From Zygnema circumcarinatum SAG 698-1b (Eukaryota > Plantae > Zygnematophyceae): DNA of 64,000 nt. Shown here piece by piece: positions 3,713-31,700 of the stretch. Both the position numbers and the translations under genes were made by a program. Position 1 is the stretch's first letter. Each line of letters opens with the position of its first letter. Location: positions 1,696,297 to 1,760,296 of the forward strand of contig CM074819.1 of NCBI GenBank assembly GCA_037447605.1, written 5' to 3'. Under the pieces are notes generated by a model. That model saw only the letters and a program-made list of their open reading frames with translations. It searched no databases and was not told the origin of the DNA.

Positions 3713-4273
3713 AGATAACTACATTTTATTTGCGACAACAGAGCAGAAAGGGGGAGAATAGGTCAGCCTACCAAGTCAGAAAGACGATTGAGATAAAAAA
3801 AACTTTCTTCTCATTTACAAGGAGAGGCCTTTTCTCCAATAGAGGCATCCACCCTGCATCCATAAAACAATAAATAATAAGTCAAGGAGACCTTTTGCAG
3901 ACAAATTGGAGCTGAAAGGACAAAATACAAGAGGTTTTAACTAAAGCCACAACCCTAAAAGCTTCATCCTAAGCGCAGACATACAATCTAGATTCAAACT
4001 TCAAGAATTTAAGGAAATCGCAAAACACACACGAAACACACAAACGAAAAAAGGGCATAGAGTGCTGAAGACAGACCACCAGTTGAATTTTGGAGCAGCA
4101 ATACGCACACACACTCTCTCTCTCGTCCCCATCTCTCTCTCCCTCCTCCCCTCCCCACCTTTCCCCCCCACCTTCCTCCCCAAATCTCCCTCCCCTTCAA
4201 CCACTCCCTTCCCCTCCGCCCTTATTCACTCCCCCCTCCTTTCCCACCCCCTCCCTCTCTCTCTCCCTCACAC

Positions 4274-5844
4274 TTACGTTTTGAGAGTGTAGGAGCCAGC
4301 CTGCTGCAGGGGCTGCAAAGTTATCCCCTCCACATTGGTAGGCACAGGCTGTCCCTTGTCGTCTATGAGGAGACTCCCCTTTCCAAAGCTGTTGTGCACA
4401 TCGAGGAGCCCTAACGGCACATCCCACGACTTCCCGTTGATCATCACTTGCATCATTGGTTCCGCATCTGCAGGTTTGGGAGGGGGAGGAGAATCACAAA
4501 AGCACAGAAGATGGTGAAAAAATTGAAGTCTAGTCGAATCTAATCGAGTCTAATCTAGTCGAATTCATGCAGTGACTTTGAGGGCTAACTTCCGGCATTC
4601 GCATGCAGATGGTAGTTGAATAAACGATCTAATGATCAGGCTGCCTTCAAGATTAAGTAGTTGAGCTAGTTAGGTAAGTTAGTTGGTTAGATGTTCGAGC
4701 AATTTGATCCGACTCGACTTAGATCGGATAGCCGCCCATACATTCAAGTGGTTTCTTTCTCACCAGGTTGAATGAATGTGGGAGCATATAATGTTGCATC
4801 CTTGGACTCTTCTTGCACCTTTGGGACCACATTAAGATGAGAATGCTGCGGTAAAGGTATCGATGAATGCAACGAAACATCTCGGCTTGCACTTTCGTCC
4901 ATGTGATTGTTGTCTTCTTGTGCAGCCTCCTCCCCATCCTCATCATTTCCATCGCTGCTTTCCAACCGCACCTTCTTCTCTGCGCCTTCTTCCTCCTCCC
5001 CCTCCTCCCCTTCTCCATCTTTCTCTGCTCCGTTACCTCCCATAGAATTCTTTCTTTTCAACCTCGCCTTCTTGTTCTGAAACCAGTTGTAAACATTGTT
5101 CTCTGTTATCGGTCCGTACTGCGCCAGTTCCGTTGTTATCTCTTTGATTTTTGGCTTGTTGGAAGTCCCTGTGGAAGCCTGAAAGTATGATTCCAAGAGC
5201 TGAAGCTGAGCAGGTGAAGGGGTCCACCTTTGTCTGTTCCGCGGAGCTGCAGCAGCCGGCTGAGAGGGCTCATATGTGTACGCTGGACACCACAGTCTAC
5301 CTGAAAAGCAGAAAGCACAATTTTAAATAGGCAGCATACATATTTTTCTGCACGCTTATGCAACATGCAACATAAGGAACAAAGTCGTTTCCTACTTGAA
5401 AAAAGGATCTAACTTATTGAATAAACTGACATGCGAGATTTCTACACGGAAAGAAAAGGACCTCAAGCCTTGAATGATCTAATCTGAGTGCTCAATAAAA
5501 CTGCACCAAAAACACAGAATCCAAAAAGCTCTTTAGAGAAGGCCGAGAGAGGGAGAGAGAGAGTGGCTGAGGGAGAAATGTGAGTGAGCGGAGAGGGAGA
5601 TGCAGTAAGGGGGAGAGAGAGAGAGAGCGAGGCTGAGGGAGAACAAAGCAAGAGCGCAGCGAGGGAGATGCAGGAGGGAGGAGGAGAGAGAGAGAGTGAG
5701 GGGGAGGGAGTGAGAGAGAGAGAGGGGGAGGGAGTGAGAGAAAGGGGGAGAGAGAGAGGGAGGGAGAGACACGCTGAGGGAAAATGCAAGAGTGAAACGA
5801 GGGAGATGCATGAGGCGGGGGAGGGAGAAAGAGAGAGAGAGAGA

Positions 5845-5894
<50 letters not shown>

Positions 5895-6324
5895 CTGATA
5901 GTCGTAGTCGTAAGTTACCAGGCATGTGTGCAGTCATTGCGCGGTACATTGCCAGCAGTTGCTGAGAGATGGTGCTAAAGACTGATATCTGACGCTTCAA
6001 CGTATCGATCTGAAGGTCGGAAATGACGATACCATGCACAGCTGGATCATACGGAGGTTTGGGAAGAGGAGGGCCCAATTGGAGGGAGACTGAGGAAGAA
6101 GAAGTGAGTGCATTTGTGCCCCCTCCAGCACTCATGTTGGAGGAGGAAAGCGCAGAAACCTGCAGAATTACTTCTCTAGAATGAGAGTCAAAATTAGAAT
6201 TAGATTTCACTCCTGAAACATCTGCTTCCATAGAAAGCGCAACAGTTACCCTAATTCTAACCCTAACCCTAAATTTGAAGGCGACCGTGGCTTGGCAAGC
6301 AGAGCCCTCTTCTTCTGCTGACAT
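4274..6324 (-). CDS. WOX: WUSCHEL-related homeobox transcription factor (WOX13-type N-terminal motif and homeodomain, plus WOX8/9/11/12-type C-terminal domain); exons ~6324-5919, 5300-4764, 4467-4274
   Basis: The spliced frame gives [62 protein letters not shown] (WOX homeodomain). Upstream is [23 protein letters not shown] (WOX13-clade motif) and the last exon is [13 protein letters not shown]...[12 protein letters not shown]. Both GT-AG introns are phase 1 and keep frame. The start codon and final few codons are uncertain: the stop overlaps a possible AC|GTAAGT donor. Confidence 0.9.
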
Positions 6325-7040
6325 TCCTTGTACCTGCGCGCCGACCCTAAAAGTGACCTAAAGTTTGGCACCAATGCAAGCTCTTACCCTCACCCGCATC
6401 CTAACCCTAACCCTAATTCTAGTCAGACAAGCAGAATGCTCTGCATGCACGGACATTTCTGTGATGTTCCCACTCTCAACAAGTGTTTCTGGAAGCGCAT
6501 GAAAAGGAGTAACCCTAAACCTTTGTTTGCTGCAACGCAAAGCTTAGCAATAGGGAGGTGAATGTTCTGTAAGACTTCCGCTGGTACAGTAAGACAGCGC
6601 CACGAAATGTATTTCCGAAACGGTACTCCTAAACTCCAGCTTACTACTCGAATCGCAGGATTTCATGTACTGATTTTTAAATCTGTTTCTTCGGTAATCT
6701 CTAATATTTGATACGCCCCACTGTCAATAGGATGCAGTGTACGGCAATTGGTGGAGCACTGTGCCTTTGGCAAAGGCGTGAGCAGGCAACCATGGCCTGA
6801 CACGTGTACAGTGATCCTACGTGGCAATTACTGATTGGGCCATCTGATTCAAGAGATTCCCCTCGTTGACCGAGAGCTGGCTTGACTGCAAATTTCCCCT
6901 CAGTATAACGAAGCTAGGAACGGAGGAAGGCAGCGAGTCTTCCACAAGAACTTGATCCATACCATAGTGTCCCTTCAATTCTCTTTGTGAGCAAAAGAAA
7001 AAGAGAAGGGGGGAGAGTTCTAAAGCAAAAGATGGTGAAT

Positions 7041-7621: not shown

Positions 7622-7803
7622 CGAGAGAGAAAGAGAGACAGAGAGAGAGATGAGATGCAGAACCGACAGCAACGAGGGTCAACCCTTTGAAAAAATCTGA
7701 GGATGAATTCTTAACAGCCCATACCTACATCTCATATCTTGTTCTATGTCATCTAACCCTAACCCTTAATCCGTTCAACCATTTACGGAGCCCGCATGTA
7801 ACG

Positions 7804-10800
7804 TCACCTGCCCATAGAACGCCCCCTTGAGCTCCCTCCTCCCCTTGAACTCCCTCCTCCCCTTGAACTCCCTCCTCCCCTTGAACTCCCTCGTCCCCTT
7901 GAACTCCCTTCCCACCTTGAGCTATCTCCCCCCCTTGAGCTCCCTCCCCCCCTTGAGCTCCCTCCCCCCCTTGAGCTCCCTCCCCCCCTTGAATTTGAGC
8001 CCCCTGGAGACCTTGTCCTTGAAAGAGGGCCTCCAAATTCCTTCCTCTCTCCAATACTTTCCTTTGAATTTGAGCCCCCGAACCGAGGCCCCCCAGAAGG
8101 TCCTTTTGGAGGTCCGCCTCCTCTCGAAGGAGGAAAAGTTCTCGTCTTTCCATATCTCGAAGCATCTGAGCCGTACGTTGTCGGCCTTCCTTTCAATCTC
8201 CGCCGTTCCTCGATCTCTTGCCTTTTCATGACCTCCAACTTCCCCCTATCATTAGTCAAATTCTCCAGCGACTCTCCCTTGCCCATCGCTGTTTCTATTT
8301 GCTTATAAAGGATGTAATCCCTCTTCGTCACCAAGCTTGTGATTTTTCCTGCGTGCAAGGAAAAGTCGATATCGTTCAGAAGATAGCAAAAGAGCAGAGG
8401 TTTATTGTAACCAATTCTTTATGAAGTAGCTTAAAACTAATCAAGTAAAAATTTACCAGAAAACTCCAAGAGCCTTCATCATCAGTCACAGGTTTAACTC
8501 TTACCTTTCGCTCCCATGCGTGCTGTCCGCCCCGTTCTATGTAAATAGTCAATCTGCAAACCGTCAAAACCGCCTGTGAGCCAGACTACTTTGACCACAT
8601 TTGCAGAACTGAAAAAACTTGTTTACGAATTGAAAAACTTCTCCACTCTCATTCAACCTAAGCAATTAAAGCATCTAACTCCCATTTAAGCATGCGAGAA
8701 TTTCAGCACTTAGACTATGTAACATCATGGATAAACATATATGTCATCCTACATCGTTCACACCATCATCACCATCATCATAGAAGTAGAAGAAGGGCAA
8801 GTCAAGTAGACGTAGAAGTCAAAGGAGGTTGTTTTATGTACCGGATTCTGTGGAAAGTCAAACATAATAACATGGTCGACCGTCAGGTCAAGCCCACGAG
8901 CTGCCAAATCCGTGCAAACAAGAACGGGTACTCGGCCAAAAGTGGGGCTCTCTGTATCTTCTGTATCGTCTGGATTCCCTCTGAACCGATTTAAGTTCTC
9001 AACTCTGCAAACTCATTGCATTGAATGTTAGAGAGGAAGGGAGAGAGAGAGAGAGAGTGAGAGAGTAGGATGAAAAAAAAAAAAAGAGTGTGGGAGGAGG
9101 GGAGGAAGAACACGCATCCCGGACATATTCAAAAACCAAATACTTCAACTTTGGTGAATTCTTAAGGTAGAACGAATGAGACTCTACTAATCTTGTTCTC
9201 ATGATTTTCCGTCCCATAGGAAACACTCACTTACTATTCAGGGAATTCCATGTGATTGAAAACCCTGAAAACACTCCAAGACACCCCAATCTTGTGCTCC
9301 TACATGAGCTCCGTTTTCCGTTTTTTGAGCGATTCCTAACTGAATTCTCATATAACAAATAACCAAATAATAACAGCTTACCTTTCGTCTGCAGGTACCT
9401 CTCCATGGTAATTCACAGTCTCCACACTATTGTCATTTAAGAAATGATCAACTGCTCGGCAGGACTGCACTGTGTTGCAGAATACCATCACCCGTTGACC
9501 CTTGGCCAGACTTGGTTGCAATACCTGCATATAAACAGGGCTTCCCCCGTTATAATTCTAAAATACAGAGAGGTAAAGAGAAAGGTAAAGACCAAATATT
9601 CTGCATTCTCAAAGAGGGCTGATTTTTGACACTTATCGGGGAATCGTGTGGCGCATGCCTTGCATGCATGAAAAAGAAGGAAATTATATGCATGAGCTTT
9701 ACCTGCATGATGGTGTCTAACTTGTTTTCATTGCCTGCAACATTGAGGAAATCGTGACGAGCTGTCGAAACTTTCTTATGAAGCGTGGAAGTTCGAATAT
9801 GGCGAATTCCGGGGAACTCTTCATCCAACAGCCTTTGTACGGACTGCATGAAATCACAGCAAACATGAAAGTTACTCAAAGTCATCACCCAACACATAAG
9901 TATGGGACAACATTACCTTCTCACGTACAAAACCAGACTATAAATTTTTTTGAATGTTGCAACCCCTGTTGATCTGTTTTCTTCAAAAACATGGTTGACA
10001 GCAAAACGTCCGGCAATTAAATATGAAGAACTTAGCTTTTGTCTGATCTTCCCTCTTCCTCCTTACCTTAGTGATTGTTGCTGTAACGAGCACTATCTGA
10101 AACGGAAGAGCATCTGGCTGCTTGCTTCGATTCCGTAATGGCAATAGAATCTTACGAACATCTGGTCCAAAGCCTCTATCGAACATAGTATCTGCTTCAT
10201 CCAGTACCTGAATGAAAAAAAGACAATGTCCAGATGCTTCAAAGCCTTATTCCTTGTCGGTTAAGTGGTGTACTTACTGTACATGGTACATTTACTTTGG
10301 CATAACTGATAGAGGAACAAAATTAAGCAAGAGATATTATAGAGAAGGTAGTAGGTAGGAAGATGATGCGTATGAAGGGAAAACTGCAGTCGAAGGCGAA
10401 AGGAGGACAAAAATAGACTCAGAAAAATAGACTCAGACTAGCGAGATATTGCATCTGCGAATAAAGAAATTTCCTTAGCTGAAACACGAAAGAACATATG
10501 GCAATGTGCCCCACATGCACCCCCCTTCTATTCCCAGTCCCTCAAACGGAAAATGCAACTTTAAAATGCAGTTCCATGCACTCACCACATACTTAACATC
10601 ACTGTATGATAGATTGCCATCCTTCATGTGCATCATGAGTCGACCGGGAGTCCCCACTACAAGATCCAATGGAGTATTCAAAGCATCTTGTTGTGGCCTC
10701 ATTCGACCCCCTCCACTGATCATAGCTGATCTGAACCTTGCATGATGACAAAGTGACTTTGCAACTTGGAGAACCTGCGCACAGATGCATCTCGCAAGAG

Positions 10801-13755: not shown

Positions 13756-16700
13756 ATGAAAGCGAAGAAGAAACGAGGAGTTGAAGCGGTAAGCTGTTGT
13801 CCGTCTGAATTTGATTTCAAGTAATTTGGAGAGAGCAGTATTGCAACACTCACTGCTGTTCCTTGAAGCTCCTTGTCAGGAATGTGTTGCTCCATATGCT
13901 GCTCGCTTATCCTGCTAGCAAGCTTCGGGAGCACTGAAGCGTCCATTTCATTTCAACTTTTTAGGAACTAAGCAGAACTAAACTTTTAGGCTGGCAAGCT
14001 TTCAAATGTTTCAAAATGCTCATTTCTTTTTCCTTCGATATGTTGTAATTACAGCCTCCCAAGGTCGGGGCATTCATCGAACGCGTTACAGGAGCGCCGT
14101 CGTCGTCTGTTCCCGGGAATTTCCTGAACCTGCTGTCGTCCTTCACCTGGGAATTCGAAAAGGCACGGCTCTGACACTCGTTCACTCCCTTTTCACTCCC
14201 TCCCCTGACCTTCTTTTCATTTCTGGAGGCGAATATTCTGCATATTTTTTTTTCTTTTGCGTCTGTCGAGACCGGACGCGTCTGCAGAGGATGACTGAGA
14301 GAGCGATTAGGCGGAGAGCCATGGAGCAGAGGCATAGGCATAGGGCTTATGTAACTAATCATGTTCATATTCTGCTATTCGTGGGGTGAATGAATCGAAC
14401 TCTACAGGGGGACTTCTATCACTGGGTGGATTTGTTCAACCACTTTGACTCCTATTTTGAGCAGCACGTTGAGCCCCGCCATGACTTACAACTCCTTGGG
14501 CAGTTCGAGCAACCCGATGCACCGTTTTCTAAGGAAGAAGTCATCCAGATACTGCGAGTGACTCGTATCATATTGGAGAATTGCTCGAACAAGCACCTCT
14601 ATAGCTCTGTGGAGGTACCTCTCCGTCACTCTCCTGTCCCTCCTCTATCTCGCTCTCTCCCCTTTCCCTTTCTTGTACCTCCACTGTCTGTTTGTTTCTC
14701 TGTATGTGTCTACTCTCGTCTCTCCGTCCTCCCTCTCTTTCTTTCATGCGCTTCCTCATCCTCGTCCATCGAGCACATTGAGCACATCGGCTTCTCGAAA
14801 AGGTGGTTGGGCTGTAGAGTTTTACCGGATACGTGCAATAGGGCATATTTTTTCCTTTTTAATGTCATACAAGTAACATCCGCATGACTTTTTTATCTGC
14901 GAGGTTTTAGAGAGGAATAAGTGTTTGCATGTCTCTTTGCATATGCGAGAACGCGCCTTCAGCTCCTCATATCCAGACACTTCAGAGTACAAACAGTGGG
15001 GGGTCTCCATGATGATTATGAACATAAATGAACATTGAATACTAGGCAGTGGATTTGCATGTACAAACGTGTTTGATTGTTGGAAATCCTCTCACTTCCA
15101 CATCAACTGCAAAACAAGAAAGTGGACGATTAGCGTAATGGGCAGTGCAAAGTCCCGCTGATTTATGCCCTGTTATCCCCTTTCTACTGTTTTTTTTTTT
15201 TTGTGTTTTCAGCATGTCAGCCTCCTCCTTGCTTCTACGGATGTGAAGGTTGTGATTGCTGCCTTAGAAGTTCTGGCAGCCTTTGTGAAGAAGCCTTTTC
15301 TTACAAGAAGTGGGCGCTGGCACGGAGAACCGAGCACAAATGCGAGGCTATTCTCTCTTTCACAGGGATGGGGGGGCAAGGAGGAGGGGCTGGGACTGCT
15401 CGCTTGTGCTTCAGGAAATGGCCTCGATTCTGATGCACAGCGACTGGGTTCCACACTTCATTTTGAGTTCTATGCATCGAGTCTAAATCCTGGAGCAGAG
15501 GATGCAGGAGCACGCACTGGGCTTCAAGTCATTCATATTGTGGATGTGCGCAAGCGGCCGGAAAGCGATCTTGAACTCGTGCAGCAGCTTGTGAGACAAC
15601 ATGCAGTTCCTCCGAACCTGCGATTCTCTTTGCTGACTCGTTTGCGATTTGCTCGCGCGTTTGCGACGTTGGAGGAGCGGAGAGACTACATTAGAGTGCG
15701 GCTGCTAGCATTCACCGTGCTCCTGCAGTCCAACCCAGATCATGAGGACCTTACAGCTTTTTTTGTGAATGAACCTGAGTTTGTAAACGAGCTCGTGATG
15801 CTGCTGAGGGCAGAGGAAGTAGTGCCTGAGGAGATTCGATCGCTTGCAGTTTTGGCACTCACAGCTCAGTCTCAAGACCGGCCCCGTCAGTCAAATGTGC
15901 TGAATGTGATTGGTGGGGGTGGGCATCGCGGAATACTACCTAGCCTTATGCAGAAAGCCATTGGTTCCCTTACTACAGGCTCTCCCGGAGCCTGCTCCGT
16001 ATCCTTTGTTGAGGCCCTTTTGGGTCTTGTTGCAGCGCTTGTAAGTACATCCTCAGGCTGCGCCTCACTGCGGGAGGCAGGTCTTATTCCTACTCTTCTT
16101 CCTCTCTTGAAAGACACTAATCCAGAGCATTCTCACCTCCTCAGTTCTGCAGCATATATTTTGGAAGCATTTATGGATTTCTCAAATGCGGCGTCAGCCC
16201 TATTCAGGGATTTGGGTGGTCTGGACGACACTATTGAGAGGTTGAAGCTGGAGGTCATGAAAGTGGAGAACAGCATCGCAGCAAAAACAGATGTAGAATC
16301 GTCTGGGAGAAATGAGGAGAGAGGAAGTGAAGACAGAGTCATGCTAGATGATAGTGCCAAGGGAAAGGCACTCATGTTGGAGGATAGTATACCTCAGGGG
16401 AATGCAAATGGGGCATCCTCAGCCAGCTCAGAGGCCATACCATATTCTCAAAGGCTGCTCCTGAAGGCACTACTTAGGGCTATTGCTTTGGCCAATTTTG
16501 TCCCTCGAAGCACTGCAAGGGTTCATGGAGTGGAAGATAGTCCTCTACCAGGTTGTCTCTGTAAGATATTCCGCCATGCGAAAGTTTTTGGTGGCGGTGT
16601 GTTCTCTTTAGCTGCATCAGTTATAAGTGGTCTGATACACCATGATCCAACATGCTACCCAGCTTTGGACGCAGCTGGATTACCCAAAGCATTTTTGGAT

Positions 16701-19700
16701 TCGATCTTGACTGGTAAGGCTTCCATTATATTCTAGCTCAATGGCAGCCGAGTCAATGAGTGTATGTTTCAGCACACAGTCAGTGTTGTCGGGAACTTTT
16801 TCTGCATGAGGTGCAAGGAAGATATTCTGCAGTCACCACACAACCACCAATTCATTCGTTTTGAAATGGTGATTTGCCTGTGGCGGTTCAACGGTGCATG
16901 CATCGGTTGTTCAACGGTTGTTTTTTAGCGACCTTTCCTTCTGAGTGGTTCCGAATCTGAGCCTGCCCTGTTACTTGCCTTGATCTATTGCAGCTATTCT
17001 TCCTTCGTCGGAGGCTATTTGTGCCATCCCCAACGCGTTAGTTGCACTCTGCCTCAACACTTCTGGTTTGCAGGCAGTGAAAGATCGGAATGCTCTCAGC
17101 TGCTTTGTCACAATCTTCACCTCCAAACAATATCAAAAAGCATTAAGTGGGGATACCCCATCGAATTTGGGTGCCGGTTTAGAGGAATTGATGCGTCATG
17201 TCCCCAGTTTGAGGGGTGCGGGTATTTCTACAAGCATAGAGATTTTGAAGATGATTGCTTCCTTGGGAGGTGCTGGAAAATCGAAGACCTTCACAGAAAT
17301 TTTGGCAAGCGTAGGTGTTGTCAAAGAAGGCACAAGTAGTGATGCACCAGTCCCCATGGAAACTGATGGAGAGGAGAAGGCCATGGAAGCCGGTGAAGGT
17401 GGAGCTGAAGGAGAGAGTGGTAAAGCAGAGGCCTCCGAAGAAAATATGGTGTCTCATGTGACTTCGGCAGACGCGGCTGGAGATGTGGAGACATTCCTTC
17501 CTGAGTGCATTGGCAACGCAGTTAGACTCCTTGAATCCATGCTCTCTAATTCAGAGAACAGTAGGGTGTTCATTGAGCAGAGAGGTTTAGAGGCCCTTCT
17601 GACCTTGTATACTTTGCCCAAGCTCCCGCTTTCCTTTGGAGGTTCAAGCACTGCTCATGGAATGTCCATAACGTTCAGAACCTTTACCCCGCAACATGCG
17701 AACCACCTCAATCGTGAGGTTGGTTGTATGCTTCGCGAATGGGTGAAGGTATCCGCAACTCTGGTGCAGAAAAGCCTCTCGGGGAAAAGGTTATCGGAGG
17801 TTTCAGAGGGGCCAAGGACAAGGTTAATCAGATGCTTGGCTGCAACAGAAAGCTTTCTTGGATTGACAGCTGTCTTAGTTAGGAGCTCTGCCTCTATGAT
17901 GACGGAGTTAGCTGCAGCAGGATCTGATCTTTTTGTTAACATTGGCACGATATATCTGGAGATTTTGTGGCAACTGGCAGTTCTGGAAGACAGTAAAGTG
18001 GAATCTAAATCAGAAGGTGAACCTGCGGGCAGTGCTGAATCTACAGATAGAGAGGAGGTCGCCGACATTACCCAGCTCATGCGGTTTATGGATGGTTGGG
18101 GTCCTGGTAGTGCCTCTGGTGTACATGTTGCCCCGGACTATATAACGTTCCCTTTACCTGATGGGGGCATTGTGCATCAGGCTAGGCAAGGAGTTAGAGC
18201 AGGTACAGGCTTGCATAGAGCTCCAAGGCCTCATGTTCCGACAGGTGGAGAGGGAGTTCTGAATGTAACCCATGTTGGAGGGCGTCAAGGAGGCCGAGTG
18301 CCTCGCCATCTTGAAGTGGTGCAAGTTGATTTGGATGGGCCACCTGCTCCTGAAACGTTCCAATCAGACTTTGCCAAGGGAAAGCCTGCAAATGTGGTGC
18401 ACCAAGAAGTAATGGCGAGGCTTGTTGGGGCTGTAAAGTTGCTATTTGCTGCGCTCGCAAAGATGATGGTAGTACCTTCTCGGCGAAGGGATGATTTGGC
18501 CAGTCTCACTCTTCCAGCGAAGAAAGTTGCAAGTTCCATAGCCTGTATTTTTGAAAAGGCTTTGTCGTTTGAGGGCAATTGGTCGGGCACTACATTTGTT
18601 GGCAGTTCCGAGTCCGAGCGGCCTTTGGCGATCAAGTGTCGGTTTCTGGGCAAGGTTGTAGGGGATATGTGCTCCATGCTACTTGATAACCAACGAAGGA
18701 CTTGTAATACTGCACTGTTGATTCACTTTTACAGTTTAGGAGCGATCAAGGAGCTTCTAGTGAGCTTCGAAGCTACCAGTCAGTTACTTTGGACTTTGCC
18801 TCCACAGGCTACATCTAGCTCACCAATGGAAACAGAAACTGGCAAAGGAGAGGATGAGAAAATGAAGGAAAAGCAAGACCTTGGAAGGCCTTGGCTGACT
18901 GAGACACTACGCAGCTATTCTCGATTGCTTGAGCAAATTGTAGCCGCACCTATGTTGCTGACCCCTGCACTGAATGGCCAGCTATTGGTCCAGCCTGTTA
19001 CTGGAGCAACAGTGCAAGTCCCTTCCGTACCTGAGGCATTTGTGAAGCAACTACAAGCTGAGGTTTTAGAGGTTGTGCTGCCAGTTTGGAGGCATCCTCG
19101 ATTTCCTGAATGTAATCCTGTTTTCATCACTTCGGTTGCCACAACGATCAATAACATCTACACGGGTGCTGGAGAAGGTCGACCCACTTCAAGAACAACT
19201 GCTGTTGGGGCTCAGGAAGGACCCCCTGCAAGGCCCCCACCACCCCCACCAGACGAAGCTTTAGTTTCCATGATAGTGGAGATGGGGTTTCCCCGAAATC
19301 GTGCAGAGGAAGCGTTAAGAAGGGTCGGCACAAACAGTGTGGAGATGGCAATGGAATGGCTTTTTAGCCATCCGGCGGAGGAGACTCCGGGGGATGACGA
19401 TGAGTTGGCTCGTGCTTTAGCACTATCTATGGGAAGTGTGGATGGGACTCCAAAGGAGCAGGCAGCGGAAAAACCGAAAGAGGAGAAACCCTCTCCTGAA
19501 GCTGAAGAAAGGAAAGGGCCTCCAGTGGAGGAGATGTTGGAGACTGCTGTGCATCTTTTAGAGCACTCTGAGGCAGTGGCTTTTCCTCTCACGGACTTGC
19601 TGCTCACAATCATTGGGCGAAACAAAGGAGAAGATCGTCCAAGAGTCTTGAATTTCCTGGCACAGCAGCTTAGGCAAAGCAGATTAGGAGATCCTAAATC

Positions 19701-22700
19701 AAAGTCGTACACAGGAGTCTTGTCCACTGTCGCTCATATACTAGCATTGGTTTGCTGCGAAGATGCGTCTGCCAGAGAGGTGGTCGCCAATTCAGGATTG
19801 GCAAAATTCGCCCTTGACCTGTTGTTCACATTTGCGGAAAAGCACGAGTGTCCCGGTGAACCTGGTGTGCCGGTTGAGGCGCCAAAATGGGTGACAGCTC
19901 TCCTCTTGGTTTTAGATTATCTTCTTCAATACAAGCCAACATCACCCTCCTCTGCAGACGACTCGCAGGGGCCGAGCTCACCTAAGGAGCAGGCAGAAGC
20001 TTCTGCAGCTGCACTTCCACCTGCAGACTTGGACATAAGGGCTAATTCTACTGCTACTGCAACTGCTGCTGAGCCGTCCACACCTGTAACGATTGGGACT
20101 GCTCTGCCTCAATTGGAGGCTCCTGCAGGAAAATCAGCTCTTGAAAGTGTGGAGGCTGAAGTAGGAAGACATTCGGAAGTTCGCAAATCAGAGCAAACTG
20201 AAAAGGATTCACTCTTTGATATTTCGGGGAAGTTTACGGGTTACTTGAATGAGCAGGAACAGGGTAGGGCTCTACGGCTGTGTGTAGACTTGATCAAACT
20301 TCAGCTTCCTGCTTCGGCTATGCAGGCTGTGCTTCAACTCTGTGCTCGATTGACCAAAAAACACTCTCTTGCACTGGAATTCTTAGAGAAGGGGGGCCTG
20401 CCGGCACTCCTTAGTCTTCCGAAACAATGTCTCTTTCCCACATTCGACACAGTTGCAGCGAGTATCATACGCCATCTGCTAGAGGATACACATACTCTCC
20501 AAGCTGCAATGGAGTCGGAAATTAAGCACACTTTGAGCTACATGCAGGGAAGGCAGGGAAACCGGCCGGTCTTGGTTGGGCCGTTTCTTACAGCCATGGC
20601 GCCATTGATTACTAGGCAGCCTGCCGTTTTCATGCAGGCAGCAACAACTGTTTGTCAGGTAGAGACTGTTAATGGGCGCTCATCTATTGTCCTGGCCAAG
20701 GATAAAGAGAAGGAGCGGGAGAAAGAAAAGGAGCGGGAGAAAGAAAAGGACAAGGAGAAGGAGAGAGAAAAGAGTAAGGATAAGGACGGGAAGGGCGCCG
20801 CTCCAACAAGTGCATCTGTTCCAATGACTGTCGATTACGGTACAGTTTCCGGAGCTGGAGAAGGAAGTCTGAAAGGACACGATGCTGGAAAAGGACATGA
20901 AGTAATTCTGGCCTCTCGATCTGGAAGACTCAAAAGGGTACCGTCGACATTTGCTCAGGTGATTGATCAATTGTTGGAGGTAATTCTACATTATCCTCCC
21001 TCAGGCCAAGACATGGAGGAGGGCACGGATGGGGAGTCAGCAACAGCGATGGAAGTAGATGACGAGCCACCTAAGCCGGCCGGCCTTCCTTCTTCACAGG
21101 AAGAGAAGAAAGGGAAACTGCCGGAGAGTGCTGGAAAGGAGGAGGAGAGTGACCAGCTTAAGGTGCAAAGCTCTGCCGCTCTGTCAAAGTTAACGTTTGT
21201 TATGCGACTGATGACGGAAATTTTGCTCATGTACTCGTCTGCCAGTGCTGTTGTCCTTAGGCGGGATACGGAGAGCAGCCAAGCAAGTCGTGGTCCAACC
21301 CCATCTGGTGCAGATTTTGCCGGTCACGGTGGTTTATTGTACCACATTTTTCATAGGCTTCTTCCTTATGCTGTCGATAAAGGTGCAGACAGACCGCGAT
21401 TGGAACGTTTGGGGGATAGGGCAGCATATTTTCTGATGGCTCTTTGTGTCCGATCGGGGGAAGGTCGCCGTCGCGTTGTGGCTGAGATGGCTAAAGCACT
21501 GCGAGAGTCGGTTACTGCTTTGTCTAAAGAGGGAAGTCTCGGAAATGCCTCACATCTGCAAGCGCCTACACGCAAAATTCGGGCTTTTGTAGACCTTGCA
21601 AATAGCCTTCTATCACACCCCCCTGCACCAAATAGCACATTGACACCTGGAGTTTCTAGTGACATGGCTCAAACCATGACAGAAGCAGGAATGGTGCAAG
21701 CTCTGACACAGACTCTGCAGTCCATTGACTTGGATCATCCAATTGCGCCCAAGTTGGTGACAACTATCCTTAAGGCCTTAGAGGCCCTTACGAGGGTCAC
21801 AAATGTTGGGGAACAAGGGGTTATTGGTGTTGGTGGAATTGGTCATAGGAGAACGGGTGGTCACGTCGATCGAACGGGAGCAGGACAGAGAGGGGCGGAT
21901 GAGAGGGAAGGGAGAAGGGAACCTACTCCAGGGGCTAATCATTTGGGAGCTGGACAACCTGATGAGCATATGCCGGACTCAAATCCGGAGGCAGGAGTGG
22001 CTGGTGGGGTGGATGGGCGAGAAAGACAAGAAGCAGACGAGGAAGAAAGGCATGATCGCGATATCATGGAGCACGATCAAAGGGTGGAAGAGGAGGAAGA
22101 GGAAGCGAGAATGGACCATCACGTTCGTTTAGCGGTGGAAGGTGTGCATAGATATCCGGATTCTGGTTCAGATCCCATGTTTAGGCCGGAACTGGATATG
22201 GTGCTGCAATTTGACTCGATTGAAAGAGATGGAGATGGGGATGATGGACAGCATGATGACGATGAGGAGGACATGGAAGGGGATGATGGAGATGAAGAAG
22301 GAGACGATCTGGCAGAAGATGATGATGAAGATGAAGAGCTTGATGAGGATGGTGAAGAAGATCAAGAAGGTGATGGTGGGCAAGTCTCACCTCCAGACAC
22401 AGATGGAGAAGATCACGATGATGATGAACATGGGCTTGGGGAAGATTATAATGAAGAGCAAGATGCAGAAGATGATGAGGAGGATGAAGATGACTGGGAC
22501 GACCAACGAATGATTGAGGTGCGTTGGCGGGACGGATTGACTGGAATGGATAGAGTCCAACTCTTGGCGGGAGGGGCAGACATTGGTGGTGTGATAGATT
22601 TCCCAGGTGGGTTTATGCAGAGAGTATCTGGGGGCGATCCCGTATATATGAACATTGACGATGTGCTTAGCACATTTAGAAGAGCTGCAGGGGCAGATAG

Positions 22701-25700
22701 ACGACGAGGAAACTTCAGAGGGTTTGGTCAGCCCTTGCGGCAGACTCAAGCAGCGGGAGTTAGTCATCCTCTCCTTGCTCGACCGTCCGGAGGAGGAGGG
22801 GAGGCAGCTGATGGAGTGGCGGTAATGGCATCAGGAGTGGGTTCTGGGGGAGTTTTGGGTCGACTGGAGGCTGAAGAGCTTCTAGGCAGAGGGGATATGG
22901 CGCAGCTTATGTTCTATGATCACCCCTTTTTGGGTGAACAGATGGCAGATGGATTGTTGAACCAGAGGACATTCGGAGGGGGGCCTTCACAGCTCCTAGA
23001 TTTTGCTGACGATCCCATGTATATGATGTGGAGGACTGGAAGGATGGATGGGAGATTGAGCAGCTGGACAGATGATGGCCTACCTCAATCGGGAGCTCTT
23101 GCATCAGGAATTGCCCAGACAATAGAAAATGAATTTTTAGTGAGAGTACCGGCTGTTAGTTCAACTCCTCAACAGCAGCCAACTCCACCTGGAGAAGCAA
23201 CTACTGGGCAACCAACTTCTAGTGGAGCTGAGGTTGGAGCAGCCCAAGGAGCTGCCCCCCCTCCATCTGAGAGACCTTTAGGAGCCACTTCTCAACCCGA
23301 AAGAATAGATAATCTATCAGACCAACTTCCTACAACGGGTGTCCCAGCAACTGAAACTGCTAATACTGGATTAACAGAGGGAGCAGTGCATATGCCAAAT
23401 GGCGGGGCAAGAGATTCTGAGCAAAGAGGTGCATCTGTTGAAGAGGTTCCTAGTGATCAAACTGAGAGAAGAGAGTGTGGTAGGGGTGAGACTGGCGAGG
23501 GCAGAGAACATGGACGGAGCATTAATGACAATGATGTCTTGATGCGTGATATTCGAGCAGAAAGGAATGAGCTTGCAGGACGAGATGCAGAGGTTGTCAG
23601 TCAAGATAGTGGCGGAAGTGGGGCAACTGCGGGAGAGAGTTTGCGGAGTTTGGAAGTGGAGGTTGGCAGTGTTGATGGACATGATGAAAGTGATCGATTA
23701 ACCACTACTGAAAGAATGCCTCCTTCAGGGGATATGCCAATGCAGGGTACAAGTGAAGGTAATAGGCATGAATCAGCGGGAGCGTTGGAGTTTAGAGATA
23801 GGGATGAAGCGATGGAAGCAGCACCATCAGCAGAGGGAGAAGGTGCGGGAGGAGAACATAGAGGGGTTGGAGCTCAGACGGAGTCCTATAGAACTGAGAG
23901 TACAGCTGCAAACCCACCGAGCATTGCAGAGCCATCTAGGGGTGCATCTGCAGAAGCTGCTATATCAGCATCAGAGAGGGCAGATCATACTGTAGTGAGA
24001 CGAGTAGAGGGAGGCGAACCTCGACCTCAGCCTGCAGGAAATGACATTGATCCAACCTTTTTGGAAGCATTGCCGGAGGACCTCCGTGCAGAAGTATTGG
24101 CATCTCAACAAGTGCAAGTAGCAAGAGCTGTAACTTCACAACCTCCTCCTCCTGAAGATATGGGAGAACTCGATCCTGAGTTTTTGGCTGCCCTTCCCCC
24201 TGATATTCAGGCTGAAGTTTTAGCACAGCAACGTGCACAGCGGGCAATAGCTGCACATGCTGCGGCTGAGGGCCAACCCGTGGATATGGACAGTGCATCC
24301 ATCATTGCTACATTTCCAGCAGAACTGAGAGAAGAGGTAAATCGGCACTTTTTGTTTCAGCAATTCATCTCCTGGAAGCATTGGCTCGAGTCTCCGAACT
24401 TCCTCTCGTGCCATAATAGTGTCGTAGGGCGACTGCTTGCAAATGCTGATGGACATGTGCCCGCTAAGTTAAGATGGGAGTGGTGTTGTATTGAGTATTT
24501 TTAGCCCAAAGTTTTCTACTTCTTGTGTAACATTTGACCATTATGTTTTAGCATTTACGGGGTGGGGTGTTCACATATTGCACTGGGTCATCTTTGTGTT
24601 CTGATTTTGATTGGAGTATGATTAATTCATCGATTTATGTTCCGAAAAAGTAGTAACCACTCAAGGCCAGGTAGAGTTCCTATTCAGCGCTGGATAAGAG
24701 GTTTCTAGAGTAGCTCTGTAATTCTAAAGACAAAAAGTTATCCATGTTCATGCCTCTAAATCACTTTCAAACCCCCCCCTCTTTGTCTGTATCCTACCCT
24801 CTCTCGCATTTTGTAGGTCCTATTGACCTCATCTGAATCGGTACTGGCTGCCCTTCCTCCTGCACTTTTGGCCGAAGCTCAGCTTCTAAGAGAGCGAGCT
24901 ATGAACCAATACCAAGCTCGTGGTTTGTATGGAGGGCAGAGGCTAGGAGGGCATCATAGAAGAGCTCATGTGGGAGGTGGGGTAGGAGGAGGAGGGGGAG
25001 GAGGAGGAGGAGGAGGAGGAGGTGGAGGAGGAGGAGGGGCTGCACAGCCAACAGCTGCAGGAACAGACCCACGGACAGTGGGTGGTAGGCCACGTGGCTA
25101 TCTTCCATATCAGCTTGGAAGTGGTACGGCGGGATCAGGTGTAGGAGCAGCGAATGGAAGTGGTAAAGGGAGGGAGAGCGAAGGGAAGCCATTGGTGGAT
25201 GTGAGCGCACTAAGGTCTCTCTTAAGGCTGCTCCGACTTGCACAGGTACATGCATTAATCATGCTCATAGAGCAGGCCCGTTTGTATGTACTGAGAGGTT
25301 ACTGCAGGACTGTTAGTGAGGAATGGGTCTTCCCTTTCCTTAGTTTGGAGTTGGTAACACTTTTGGACCATGAATTGAGATCTAGTGAAACCTATGCATA
25401 TCAAAAGGATCGAATGATGATGATGTGTAGAAATCCCCCGCAGCATGGCCTATGTATTACCGACATTTGACGCTGTGATTGCTTATTTTATCTGGATTGT
25501 TCGCTTTGAAGATTCGGAAGCAAAACTCTGACATTGAAAAAGCATCCTCTGTGTGGTGATGTGCAGCCTTTAGGGAAGGGCTTGCTGCAGCGTCTCCTTC
25601 TCAACCTCTGCTCCCACAGCTTAACAAGGGCCTGCCTTCTGCAGCTACTTTTGGATATGTTAAGACCAGAAGCAGAGGGAGTTGCTGTTGGTATTACTGC

Positions 25701-28700
25701 AGCTGATGGGGCTCCACCACAGCGACTCTATGGCTGTCAATGGAATGTTGTATATGCTCGGGCGCAGTCATCTGATGGTATGCTGCTTCCATATTCTTTG
25801 TTCTTGTTGTTTGGATTAAACAATCTTGTGAATAAAGGTCCTGCTTAAACAGAATGCGTTTATCGTCTAGGCCCTAGCATTTCATTCCGTTAAACTTGAA
25901 AAGGAGTTTGAACTTGAAAAGCTGCTAAATGTTCTGGAAGACTACTTTTTGGGATGGCAAGAAAGCCATCTAAGTTCTGAAAATGTTTTATCAAACGGAA
26001 ACATCATCTAGGTGCTATCCACTTGAACCATGCTAAAGTATTAACTCACACATCTTTCCTTCAAGGAAGAAAAAAAAAGGTAGCTCCGTCCCGCCTTGCC
26101 GCATGTATAAGCCATGCTAATGTGAATCCTGAAATTCTCTCCCTTTTTATTATTGTAGGTGTTCCCCCATTGGTCTCAAGGCGAGTGCTGGAGATTCTCA
26201 CCTATTTGGCCAGACATCATAGCCAAGTTGCTCATCAGTTATTGCTTCTTGAGAGACCGGAAAGTACTACAATCCCACAACAAGGTTTGCTTTCACCTCG
26301 TGCGAAAGAAAAGGGGAAAGCCAAAATTATGGAGCCGGCTACTCCTTTCGAGAAGGCTGGAGAGAAAGTGAAAGAGGTCCCCTTAATTTTGCTTCTGAAA
26401 TTGCTGAACCAACCGTTGTATTATCGGAGTAGTGCTCATTTGGAACAGGTGAGTCAGGCAAACATGTAGAAGTGCCAGTTATATGTTACTTTTCTGCATT
26501 GTTAAAGTAGGGTTATTTGTAAAGTAGACATGAGACTGCTCTGTGTTAGTGTATGGATAGTCTTCTCATGGGAAGGAAATAACCCTAATGTGGCGAAAAA
26601 GCCTAGTTAACAGTCAGTTTTGAACTCCCAGCAGTTTTCTTGCCTCGTCATTCGCTCTGCAAGTGCTGCTGACATGATTTATTACTCCATAATCTTTGAG
26701 TTATTGTTATGTTTAACCTCGTACTTTAGGACGCTTTATAGCTATCCCTCCTCTGTTTCCTTTGTCCCTTCATTTGTTGTGCAAGCTCTAACTTCCTGAT
26801 CTATCTATCTTTGTCCTGGTCTTTTGTTCCTTCTCCTCTCTCTTTCTCACTCTCTCTCTTTCTCTTTTTCTCTCTCTCGCTCCCACTCTCCTGCCAGGTC
26901 ATGGGCCTGCTTGAGGTAGTCGCTCGCAGTGCTGGAGTAGAGGCAACAGAGTCCCGCAATCGAATAAAAGCAGCAGCCGCTGCAAGGGCTGCTGAGATCG
27001 CTTCAGCAGCAGCAGCAGCTGCTGCTCATGCTGCTGCTGCTGCACGTGCAAACCTACCCTCCATAGGTCCTGCTATTACATCACAAACTACAGTCCAACC
27101 CATGTCAGAAGCAAGCCCAGAAATTGCAGAAACAGCACTTCAAATCTCCTCTACCCCTTCAGTGGCTGCTGCGGAAGAAGAGGCTACTCTTCCTTCTCAT
27201 GTTGAAGGTTCTGAAGGAGGTGAAGCTGTGGCTATGGCTACCACGGAGACGGGTACAGGCGGTGGTGTAGAAGTGGAACAAGGAGCTGCAAATGAGCGAG
27301 AGAGAGGAAGGGATGGTGGGAGAGAAGGTGGAATGCCTGTAGAAAAGGTAGAGGCAGGTGAAGCTCAGCAGGGGCCTACATCTGTAATAGAGCCTGAAGG
27401 AGGCCCTCTACCAATGGCATTGACTGTACTGTCTGAATTGCCCAAGACTGAGCTGCAAGTACTCTGCCAATTATTAGCCCGGGAAGGGTGAGATTCCCTC
27501 TCTCTTATTGCAGAGACCTCTTTCAACGTTTGTTCATTTATATTGAAGAAATGCACCGTCGATGTTGTATTTTACTTATGAAGTTTTTCATTTTTTTTCT
27601 GTAGGTTATCCGACACTGCTTATGCGCGAGTCTCCACTGTTTTGAAGCTTCTTGCTGATGCTGTTCCCCCACATCGTCTGCTCTTCATAGAGGAGTTGGC
27701 TGAAGCTGCTCGTCAGCTTAGTGGGCGGGCAATAGCAGAGCTGCAAGCACTGGGAGAGAATGAAGCCGTTCTGAATAGCAGCTCAATGGCAGGGGCCGCT
27801 ACTTTACGAGTGCTGCAGACTCTAAGTGCTCTGCTCTCTATGAGCGGGAGTTTGAAGGTGAGAGAAACTGGGGTGAGGTCTTTTATGAATTCGATGACTA
27901 TTTCCTCTCTACAACTGTTTGCCACTCGGCTGAGTTTGTCTAATGAACTTTCTAAGGCTTCTTCTACGGACTACGGTATTCATGCAAGCAGGTTTCTATT
28001 ACTTCTATTACTATTACTTATTATTATTATTTTTTCTATTACTAGGTTTCAGATACTGGGCTTTAAGCTGTGTTTGTAACATCAAGAACAGCTCTCTTTC
28101 CCAGCTTGCCCTGTGCATCCTGAGCTCTACCTTCATTCCCTTCATCTTTCTTTGCGAAGAAATTTATCATCTTGTTCGATTCGGCCTTCAGCAAGTTGCC
28201 TATTGTTCTCAAGACTCAACTAAGAACAAAGTGCACATTGTTATTATACAGACAAACCTTAGCCCATCTTCCACTGCTGAAATCATCCTAATCCTACTCG
28301 TCCCGTGTACTTCCTCCTTTTTGTTCTCAGGAACAGGAAGGAGAATCTGCAGCTCAAGAGAAGGAGGACGGATTAGCAGTTGCAATTGAGCTTAATTCAG
28401 CATTAGAACCTCTCTGGCAAGGCCTCAGCTTATGTGGTACGAAATTTGAAGCTCGTCTTGGAAACTCTGCTACATTCAGTGGCGCTACAGCCGCCGAAAC
28501 TGCAGCAGGGGGAGCCGCTACAGGAGCTGTCACTCCTCTCCCACCCGGAATTCAGAAGCTTCTTCCCTTTGTAGAGGCATTTTTCGTGCTATGTGATCGA
28601 CTGAGAGCAGGTCAGGGAGAGGTAGAACTTGGGGATGAAGTTGTTGGAAAGGCAGTGCCTCGTTCTCCAAGTGTGAATGGAGCAGGCCCGTTTTTAGCTG

Positions 28701-31700
28701 CTTTGCCATCTGCAGATAAGGGAGGGCCTTCATCTTCTTCAAAGGGAATAGTTTCGGTGGTTGGAAATCGAACTGGGAACTCGGTTTCTGAGAGGGGAGG
28801 AACTACCCTTAATAGATTTGCGGAAAAGCACAAGCGTCTATTGAATGCGTTTATCCGACAAAACCATAGTCTTCTAGAGTCGTCCCTTTCGCTTTTGTTG
28901 CGGACTCCCCGACTGCTTGACTTTGACAACAAAAGGACTTATTTCCGAAGCAGAATTCGACAGCAGCATGAGCAGCCTCACTATGGGACTCTGCGAATCA
29001 GCGTGAGGAGGGCGTATATTTTGGAAGATTCCTACAACCAGGTGGAAACCTTTGTTTGGTGACTCCTTGAATGTTGAGTCTTTGGGTAGTGAGGATATTC
29101 GCAGGGTTCATAAACAGTCTATAATCTAAGGCTTGTAAGGTTTCCTTTTCAGCATCTTCAAGTTTGTAGATGGGTTTTGTCCCTAAAATCTATGTCTGGA
29201 GATGCGGAATTTCAGTGTTTCCATTCTAATTTTGGGTCTGAATCTTTTCTGGATATGATGGGATGCGTGGGTTGGCAGCTTCGAATGCGAACTCCTGAAG
29301 AGCTCAAAGGGCGATTAACTGTACAGTTCCAAGGGGAGGAAGGAATCGATGCGGGAGGGCTTACACGAGAGTGGTATTTGCTCCTTTCTAGAGTAATCTT
29401 CGATAAGGGAGCTCTACTTTTTACAACTGTCGGCAATGATTCCACATTTCAGCCTAATCCTAATTCGGTTCTTCAGCCCGAACACCTCTCTTATTTCAAG
29501 TTTGTGGGCCGAGTGGTAAGTTTGCTGGGCCACCTCATTATCAAAATCATCTTCTCCACTTTCAGAACCTCTATATTCTCATTCTTTTCATATGCGAGGG
29601 AATCCGATGCTCTTGCAAGTATCTCAGTTTGCCTACCCTGAAGGAACTTTATGGACCCGTCAAACCCTAGAATCATTAATATCAACAAATCTGTGCGTTA
29701 TGGTTCACTTGATGACCGGAGTCTCCCTCTCCTGTCTCCCTCTCTTCCCCACCTTAGCTTAAGATATTAAGCTTAACGGAACTGGTGCAGGTTGCTAAAG
29801 CGCTATATGATGGACAGCTTCTTGATGTTTACTTCACTCGTTCATTCTATAAGCATATCTTGGGAACAAAAGTAACGTACCATGACATTGAAGCCATTGA
29901 TCCGGACTACTACAAGAACCTGAAATGGATGCTTGAGGTCAGTTTTCTCCTCTCTGCCATGTTTTGTCGGCCCACTCAAACTGCTTTTCAGTTATGTTGG
30001 TTTATTTTGAACCTTTTCGCAGAGGGCAATATTGGCTTAGGCTTAGCCTCTAGAACATCCCAGAGAATGCTCTGAATCATCATTACTGACAAAACACCCC
30101 TCTTACCCACCCCCCCAAATAAAAACGATGTGCTGCAGAATGACATCAGCGACATCTTGGACCTCACTTTCAGTATGGATGCAGATGAAGAAAAGCACAT
30201 TCTGTATGAGAAGGGAGAGGTATGCACGCCGCCTCCTACCTGAAAGAATATTTCATCATGTAACTTTGCTTAGGTCTGTAGTCATTAGTGGGTAGAATTT
30301 CCTAGACTGAAAAATGTGCCCTTCGGTTCCCCAATGGCGACTGCATTGCAAAAGTGGTCTCATGCCAAAGGGGTCAGTAGCGGGCAGAAAGAAATAGAAA
30401 AAAATTCTAAGGGAGGGTGCGAATATAAGCGAGACAAGCTGAATCTTGGAATCCCAGGGCTATATAAAACTCTGCCAGGGTCTGAAGCTGACTCAAGCCC
30501 TCCCTCACATTTCTCTCAGCTTGACTATCTCATATGCTTTACGAGAGAGAGATAGGAGGTTAGCTGTTCCAATTATCCTTATGCATGCTTGTGTTGTAAG
30601 GTGGATGTTTGAGGAAAGAGCTCTGAAAGCTCATTGCAAAGCTCATTCTCTGAACTCCCTTTTTTATATACTTTACTTTTTGTTTGCTGCATATTCTGAC
30701 ATCGTGGATATGGGGCTGAAAACAGGTGACGGACTATGAGCTGATTCCGGGAGGGCGAAATGTGCGTGTAACGGAAGAGAACAAGCATGAATATGTGAAC
30801 CATGTTGCGGAGTATAGAATGACTGTTGCCATTAGACCGCAGATCAACGCTTTTCTGGAAGGTTTCAACGAGCTGATTTCGAGAGATCTGATCTCAATTT
30901 TCAATGACAAGGAACTCGAACTACTAATATCTGGACTCCCTGAAATCGACAGTAAGTCCTTTTATTTCTCAGCAACTGAAATAGAATAAGATAATGGAGG
31001 TTAGGATAATGCAGTTAGGCTACAAGAGGATTGATCTCGGGCAGTTCTGAACAGATGAATGCGTGCATTATAGATGGCATTATCCCTATTTGAGTCTAAT
31101 TTGCATCACGGCATTAACGCTATTTGGGTCTAATTTGCACTATGGGATTAACCCTATGTGGGTCTTGTATGCGTTCTGGGATCAGTCCTATTTAGGTCTA
31201 ATATGCTTTATGGGATCAACCTTTTTTTTGGGGCTGATTTGTGCTTTGTGGGTGCGGCCTCTCTCTCTCTCTCTCTCTCTTGCTTCTTGCAGCTGAGAAT
31301 CTGCGAGCCAATACGGAGTACACAGGATACACTGTGGCAAGCCCTGTCGTTCAGTGGTTCTGGGAGGTAGTGAGAGCATTTTCTAAGGAGGATTGTGCTC
31401 GACTTCTGCAGTTCATCACCGGCACATCCAAGGTCAGCTCTATCACAACAAGCTCTCTCTCAAACTCTCTTTTCAGCTCCTATCAAGGGGCTGTCACTCT
31501 CTCTCAGCCTCACTTAGGGGCTCTGAGGAGGCCTTAACACTGGGAGAGGGTAGAGGCAGAGGGCAGGCAAAGGGTTGAGAACTATGGGTATTTGGACCTT
31601 ATTGCTCTGCTCCATAGAAAGCGGCAAGGTGGTCGTAGTGAAGAACGGAGTCGCCCTTTTCATTCTTGAGCGGCAGTGGACATCAGCCCGAACCCTCCCT

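Follow-up and report, generated by a model that had tools for sequence, protein, structure and literature searches.

The 64-kb window analysed here, which is the whole 64,000-nucleotide stretch of Zygnema circumcarinatum contig CM074819.1, contains one WOX gene, on the minus strand. Its predicted product joins a WOX13/T1WOX motif and a T1-type homeodomain to a C-terminal domain homologous to the motif of the T2WOX proteins (WOX8/9 and WOX11/12). Below we argue that this is a T1 gene and that the shared domain is most likely ancestral to the WOX family. Homology searches were run exon by exon, and the protein P0007, from a close relative, was used for whole-protein questions. The features of the gene, in positions of the window, are as follows.

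5919..6324, minus strand: exon 1, coding part; donor GTAACT at 5919; start codon uncertain
5935..6024, minus strand: WOX13/T1WOX motif; 35 bits against an angiosperm WOX13-motif hidden Markov model (HMM); helix of ~30 residues predicted in P0007
5301..5918, minus strand: intron 1; phase 1, GT-AG, rich in CT microsatellite; exon 2 acceptor TTTTCAG
4764..5300, minus strand: exon 2; homeodomain, then an acidic low-complexity linker; donor GTGAGA
5053..5235, minus strand: WOX homeodomain of T1 type, NVYNWFQNK; Pfam PF00046 match (E 6.6e-12) and tree position
4468..4763, minus strand: intron 2 (predicted); phase 1, GT-AG
4278..4467, minus strand: exon 3; encodes a C-terminal domain (~60 residues) with homology to the T2WOX motif (VFIN + LQxG); predicted beta-grasp
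4272..4277, minus strand: probable splice donor GTAAGT, phase 2, enclosing a TAA; candidate downstream acceptors at 3911, 3853 and 3199

Gene layout and module identity

Candidate start codons for exon 1 lie at 6324, 6231 and 6134. The ATG at 6231 begins MEAD, like the Mesotaenium homologue, and the one at 6324 is disfavoured because telo-box-like words fall partly in frame upstream of 6231. These telomere-like TTAGGGTT words are clustered at 6250-6520 (-), in the 5' region. The two introns share phase 1, and the exon lengths preserve the frame. A first-pass annotation of this DNA, made from the letters alone, had remarked that a list of open reading frames (ORFs) hides exon 3; indeed, the unspliced exon-2 frame runs into a stop at 4746-4744, six codons into intron 2. 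It had also begun exon 3 at 4467, in phase with the donor at 4764, and at the DNA level we reached the same model with the frame kept. The CTGCAG acceptor at 4467 is the most pyrimidine-rich (16/20) of nine candidates in intron 2, and another acceptor at 4539, likewise in frame, is weaker. These signals predict a message spliced from 4764 to 4467.

Exon 3 also behaves as coding sequence. Its identity by codon position is 0.68/0.86/0.44 to L001 and 0.70/0.86/0.51 to a relative, and L001 uses a different codon at 17 of the 36 identical residues. This pattern, with differences mostly at third positions, indicates purifying selection. Both L001 and L003 are uninterrupted ORFs on short contigs holding all three modules, and P0007 has all modules in one uninterrupted ORF on five contigs of <2 kb (Logan runs SRR8128904/6).

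The first-pass annotation ended exon 3 at the TAA at 4276-4274. The domain is complete there, and it would be complete with or without further coding sequence, but a short fourth exon is likely because this TAA lies inside a consensus donor (AC/GTAAGT) that matches the intron of three relatives in codon and phase: that codon, four residues past the final Tyr of the domain, is interrupted by a phase-2 intron in Closterium, Diphasiastrum and Ceratopteris. The Selaginella protein P0012 and one Ceratopteris isoform likewise end at, or barely beyond, the phase-2 donor codon, so that read-through into that intron would bring a quick stop in several species.

The exon 1 motif and the homeodomain had been read as typical of the WOX13 clade, and both readings were borne out. 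Against the HMM built only from angiosperm WOX13 motifs, the exon 1 motif scored 35 bits and T2 proteins scored <0. Immediately upstream of it, at 6045-6070 (-), we observed an L-P-x-P-x-Y motif common to the Closterium, Mesotaenium, P0007 and Diphasiastrum proteins and not seen among the angiosperm WOX13s inspected. The homeodomain gave the only Pfam match of the gene, and the named best matches in the homologue search were WOX13-type proteins (64-69%). Its third helix carries NVYNWFQN, followed by K where the canonical NVYNWFQNR has R, a change that may alter DNA contacts. WFQNK occurred in two algal homeodomains, the one at 5074-5100 (-) of the window and one at L011:4697-5305; every other WOX protein retrieved reads WFQNR.

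A homeodomain phylogeny, which the first-pass annotation had proposed as a check, placed Zygnema among T1 proteins: in this tree of 67 columns, with long branches flagged, it grouped with Closterium, Mesotaenium and P0007 at 98/88, and the T2 rows stood apart at 98/99. The phase-1 first intron (5918), after the T1 motif, has the same place and phase in Closterium, Selaginella, Diphasiastrum and Ceratopteris. The protein has neither the NVFYWFQNR signature nor a T2-type homeodomain, it does have the T1 motif, and its nearest relatives are algal rather than seed plant. On present evidence, the Zygnema gene is a T1WOX member, neither a T2 member nor a chimera, and its product presumably binds DNA and regulates transcription.

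We searched exon 3 against 1.8 billion representatives and matched 54 cluster representatives. The top matches were T1-homeodomain proteins carrying both the T1 motif and the C-terminal domain, interspersed with T2 proteins; seven full-length angiosperm proteins with NVFYWFQNR, WOX8/9/11-like or unnamed, were included. Every full-length match bearing the domain was a WOX protein. Matches to the repeat proteins P0013, P0017, P0027 and P0044 were judged spurious. The first-pass annotation had recognised exon 3 as the C-terminal domain of WOX8/9/11/12, and the profiles agree: exon 3 scored 67 bits against an HMM of seven T2 sequences only (best of 5000 shuffles, 10.4), a score somewhat inflated because those sequences were gathered by their similarity to exon 3. 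It scored 95 bits against the T1 version of the domain. When the T1 and T2 domain profiles were aligned with each other by hhalign, they matched at 99.7% (E 6e-27), gapless over 64 columns, and an independent structure search with the exon-3 domain found a WOX9 model (Atlas) at a template modelling (TM) score of 0.93 and a root-mean-square deviation (rmsd) of 1.0. The homology of exon 3 to the T2 C-terminal motif is secure; the VFIN and LQxG motifs are homologous, but they are not diagnostic of T2. The domain had no match in Pfam, PDB-sequence or Atlas-feature searches, and word-index homologue searches are insensitive for it.

Distribution and descent of the C-terminal domain

Presence and absence were scored by a profile scan of all retrieved WOX proteins. 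The domain is present in T1-homeodomain proteins of the chlorophyte Pyramimonas (two), of Closterium, Mesotaenium and the source of P0007, of Riccia (two), Selaginella (two) and Diphasiastrum (three), and of Ceratopteris (WOX13A), Adiantum, Ginkgo (two) and Pinus pinaster. For several relatives the three-part layout of T1 motif, T1 homeodomain and C-terminal domain is backed by transcripts. Judging from these sequences, the combination is not peculiar to Zygnema; it is common in T1 WOX proteins, those of angiosperms and mosses excepted. The novelty that the first-pass annotation had left in question therefore survives only in part, since both parts are already there in CrWOX13A, SkWOX13B, one protein of Selaginella moellendorffii and one WOX of Pinus pinaster, all long deposited, but we found no open-access paper that notes it.

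The domain is partial in models from Gnetum and Taxus. In WOX13-like proteins of the mosses Sphagnum and Ceratodon (P0085, P0086, P0146) it is recognisable but decayed; in these proteins the remnant is followed by a conserved SLAGGPVPSMD peptide. About 40 named angiosperm WOX13s, of which some are partial models, lack the domain (<=0.3 bits). The T1 motif is absent from the T2 proteins scanned, and a fern NVFY-type protein (P0157) has neither the T1 motif nor the C-terminal domain. A eukaryotic metagenome contig from a second alga (L011:3793-6671, GC content 54%) has exons for the T1 motif, homeodomain and C-terminal domain; the T1 and T2 profiles score this last almost alike (68 vs 64 bits), and one tree sets it beside T2 with weak support.

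In Closterium, Selaginella, Diphasiastrum, Ceratopteris, Zygnema and Lupinus WOX9, 6-12 codons separate an upstream phase-1 intron from the domain, and the exact identity of these positions is unprovable because the linker varies in length; in Curcuma WOX11 the intron as annotated is phase 2. The intron on the 3' side is phase 2 in T1 and phase 0, 5 nt upstream, in T2. In the domain tree, Zygnema grouped with Closterium, Mesotaenium and P0007, and the T2 domains formed a clade of their own (97/97). Judged by the trees alone, the host would be a conjugating green alga or close kin. Since the homeodomain and domain trees, with 62-67 columns, do not resolve the backbone, the case for ancestry rests on distribution and parsimony. 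A single origin before the chlorophyte-streptophyte split, followed by losses, would be simpler than repeated gains. The 'T2-specific' motif is most likely ancestral to the WOX family, with retention and loss differing between lineages.

We propose that the Zygnema gene is an ordinary, vertically inherited T1 (WOX13-type) WOX that would retain the ancestral layout of the family: an N-terminal helical T1 motif, a homeodomain and a ~60-residue C-terminal beta-grasp domain, with disordered linkers between them. The C-terminal domain would have been in place by the chlorophyte-streptophyte split. An ancestral architecture later partitioned between clades, as the first-pass annotation suggested, is the best reading, and T1 proteins with the domain from Pyramimonas to Pinus support it. 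The partition itself is best read as uneven. The T2 lineage (WOX8/9/11/12) would have retained the domain without the T1 motif, and in T1 genes of liverworts, lycophytes, ferns and gymnosperms both parts would have persisted, the domain decaying in mosses and being lost only in angiosperm WOX13.

Predicted fold, proposed function and alternatives

The fold of the domain was predicted with AlphaFold2 from an alignment of 52 sequences, and the 62-residue model reached a predicted local distance difference test (pLDDT) score of 95.7. The top 50 rows of a fold search (VIA) were mostly ubiquitin-like domains (Z 5-6, rmsd about 2-3 A), with ubiquitin, the BAG1 ubiquitin-like (Ubl) domain, UBX and ThiS matched over 52-58 residues and Foldseek E values no better than 0.03. 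The C-terminal domain is thus predicted to be a compact ubiquitin-like beta-grasp, a mixed sheet on one helix. The full-length P0007 model contains a 30-residue helix (the T1 motif, 56-85), a three-helix homeodomain and the C-terminal domain, with disordered linkers between the modules and no fixed packing among them (predicted TM score, pTM, 0.33).

T1 domains have K-x-W on strand 2 in 14/14 and D at the later hairpin in 13/14; T2 domains have V-x-F/T/W-E and H at these places. Such clade-specific residues suggest a changed binding surface, and with it a change of partner between T1 and T2. There is no di-glycine for conjugation at the C-terminus of the domain. None of the 52 domain members matched Pfam PB1 and no PB1 entry was named in the top fold rows; of the PB1 features, the invariant T1 lysine lies on strand 2 rather than strand 1, and of the D-x-D/E-G-D pattern only one Asp can be matched. 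PB1, UBX and RA-type beta-grasp modules dock proteins in regulators. By analogy, docking or oligomerisation is the likeliest role of the C-terminal domain: the homeodomain would bind promoter DNA, the acidic linker may aid activation, and the non-catalytic beta-grasp domain would serve to dock another WOX molecule or a different protein as partner. The one functional hint in the open-access literature is indirect and comes from WUS, which lacks the intermediate-clade motifs and, as cited in PMC6788082, fails to rescue wox8 wox9 embryos.

Taken as a whole, an ancestral three-module WOX with a beta-grasp domain, lineage-wise loss and a docking function is in our view quite probably the best explanation. 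Besides the inflated T2 score, several observations weigh against it. The Zygnema algal group in the domain tree reached 90/91 (not starred) on 62 columns, and approximately unbiased (AU) tests on that tree rejected neither of two alternatives, a pairing of Zygnema with T2 (p 0.135) or a sister relation of T2 to all streptophyte T1 (p 0.228). The Pyramimonas proteins have a weak T1 motif, scoring 12-16 bits. Loss or truncation has left a Spirogloea model (P0100) without the domain, as it has many short T1 sequences from algae or metagenomes. The Z-scores of the fold matches are middling and uninformative on function, and we found no functional experiment on the domain in the open-access literature.

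Three other explanations can be set beside it. The domain might be ancestral and yet act within its own protein, in stability, turnover or auto-inhibition, rather than in docking; we consider this unlikely, if worth keeping in mind. Ubiquitin-like folds do also act as degradation or proteasome-binding tags, and angiosperm WOX13 and mosses can dispense with the domain, but the P0007 model (pTM 0.33) predicts no fixed packing on the other modules, the invariant K, W and D positions of each clade are more in keeping with a binding face than with a role in structure alone, and the domain lacks a C-terminal di-glycine for conjugation. We regard as very improbable that the domain was born in a single WOX lineage and reached the other by shuffling of a phase-1 exon, or came repeatedly from another family, which would make the T1 proteins bearing it chimeric. 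It does occupy its own intron-bounded exon, T1 and T2 disagree in the phase of the 3' intron and, by 5 nt, in its place, and the AU test leaves Zygnema with T2 unrejected. What speaks against shuffling is the distribution: the domain occurs in T1 proteins of chlorophytes, streptophyte algae, liverworts, lycophytes, ferns and gymnosperms, and T2 occurs only in seed plants (PMC6788696). Moreover, groups in the domain tree track organism groups, and each full-length protein with the domain is a WOX.

Marginally less probable again is that the ancestral layout is real but Zygnema skips exon 3, or ends its message in intron 2 (4744), so that the main product is without the domain. The clean termination of the unspliced frame six codons into intron 2 would suit this. 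Against it stand a consensus donor and acceptor in frame, the purifying selection on exon 3, the joined form that P0007, the closest relative, has as an uninterrupted ORF on its five contigs, and the intron of the same phase in relatives. Going beyond the ancestral three-module reading, we see an even chance that the first green-plant WOX had a ubiquitin-like docking domain, that the intermediate-clade motif is its retained form and no innovation of seed plants, and that the superclades arose partly through reciprocal module loss and resurfacing of the domain for new partners.

Implications and comparison with known systems

WOX8/9/11/12 proteins drive embryo patterning and root regeneration. 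Their C-terminal motif has been used to define the clade and to place fern and lycophyte genes (PMC6788696, PMC6788082). VFIN and LQxG were defined as motifs of the WOX8 group, with no HMM match listed in the WOX13 set, in a study that also reported, for the WOX13 clade, a conserved first intron lying after the WOX13 motif (Deveaux 2008, PMC2584047). They were later merged into a 60-aa 'superclade-specific' T2WOX motif of seed plants (Wu 2019, PMC6788696), and homeodomain-only proteins have been taken as the ancestral WOX state (Lian 2014, PMC3913392). We considered whether the 'supplementary C-terminal motif' of moss and gymnosperm WOX13 in Deveaux 2008 is the exon-3 domain; the supplement shows QdxxxxLL instead (PMC2584047). 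The searchable text of a 2025 Ginkgo study describes 'unique' motifs in GbWOX13B/C and makes no T2 link. Among open-access papers we found no report of the shared T1/T2 domain or its fold, and that earlier literature had already noticed the shared domain seems to us possible but somewhat doubtful.

Were the motif ancestral, T2 could not be defined by having it, and fern NVFY-type proteins and T3 would have lost it. Arabidopsis WOX13 would then be a reduced form that represents the 'ancient' clade poorly as a model, and the bare-homeodomain ancestor (PMC3913392) would need revision. The predicted 60-residue fold, with its clade-specific residues, offers a handle for finding partners. These results matter for what they correct across the family and for the fold they assign, rather than for an unusual locus, and the ancestry proposal reaches further than the first-pass annotation did.

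Elsewhere in the window, a tandem repeat of 18-nt units with GC-rich open frames lies upstream of the WOX gene at 7749-8358 (-). A large multi-exon gene at 14390-29060 (+) has an open stretch of 2506 codons at 16984-24501; its peptides resemble those of a HECT ubiquitin ligase of the UPL1/2 (HUWE1) type.

The predicted exon-3 fold shares the strand-strand-helix-strands topology of beta-grasp domains (BAG1 Ubl, UBX, ThiS, ubiquitin). Unlike them, it has a short helix, no di-glycine and no detectable sequence similarity, and no subfamily stands out. Like Zygnema, members of the T1WOX, ancient or WOX13 clade (AtWOX13, PpWOX13L, CrWOX13A, SkWOX13B) have the upstream T1 motif, NVYNWFQN and a phase-1 intron after the motif, and those outside angiosperms have the C-terminal domain. 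Zygnema differs from canonical members in the K for R after WFQN, from angiosperm WOX13s in that they keep no trace of the domain, and from mosses in that theirs is decayed. With T2WOX (WOX8/9, WOX11/12) it shares the homologous, gapless C-terminal domain, its predicted fold (TM 0.93) and the upstream phase-1 intron (Lupinus WOX9). Unlike Zygnema, T2WOX proteins have NVFYWFQNR, no T1 motif and a phase-0 3' intron, and their domain reads V-x-F/T/W-E and HSSG where the T1 domain reads K-x-W and D-x-x-G.
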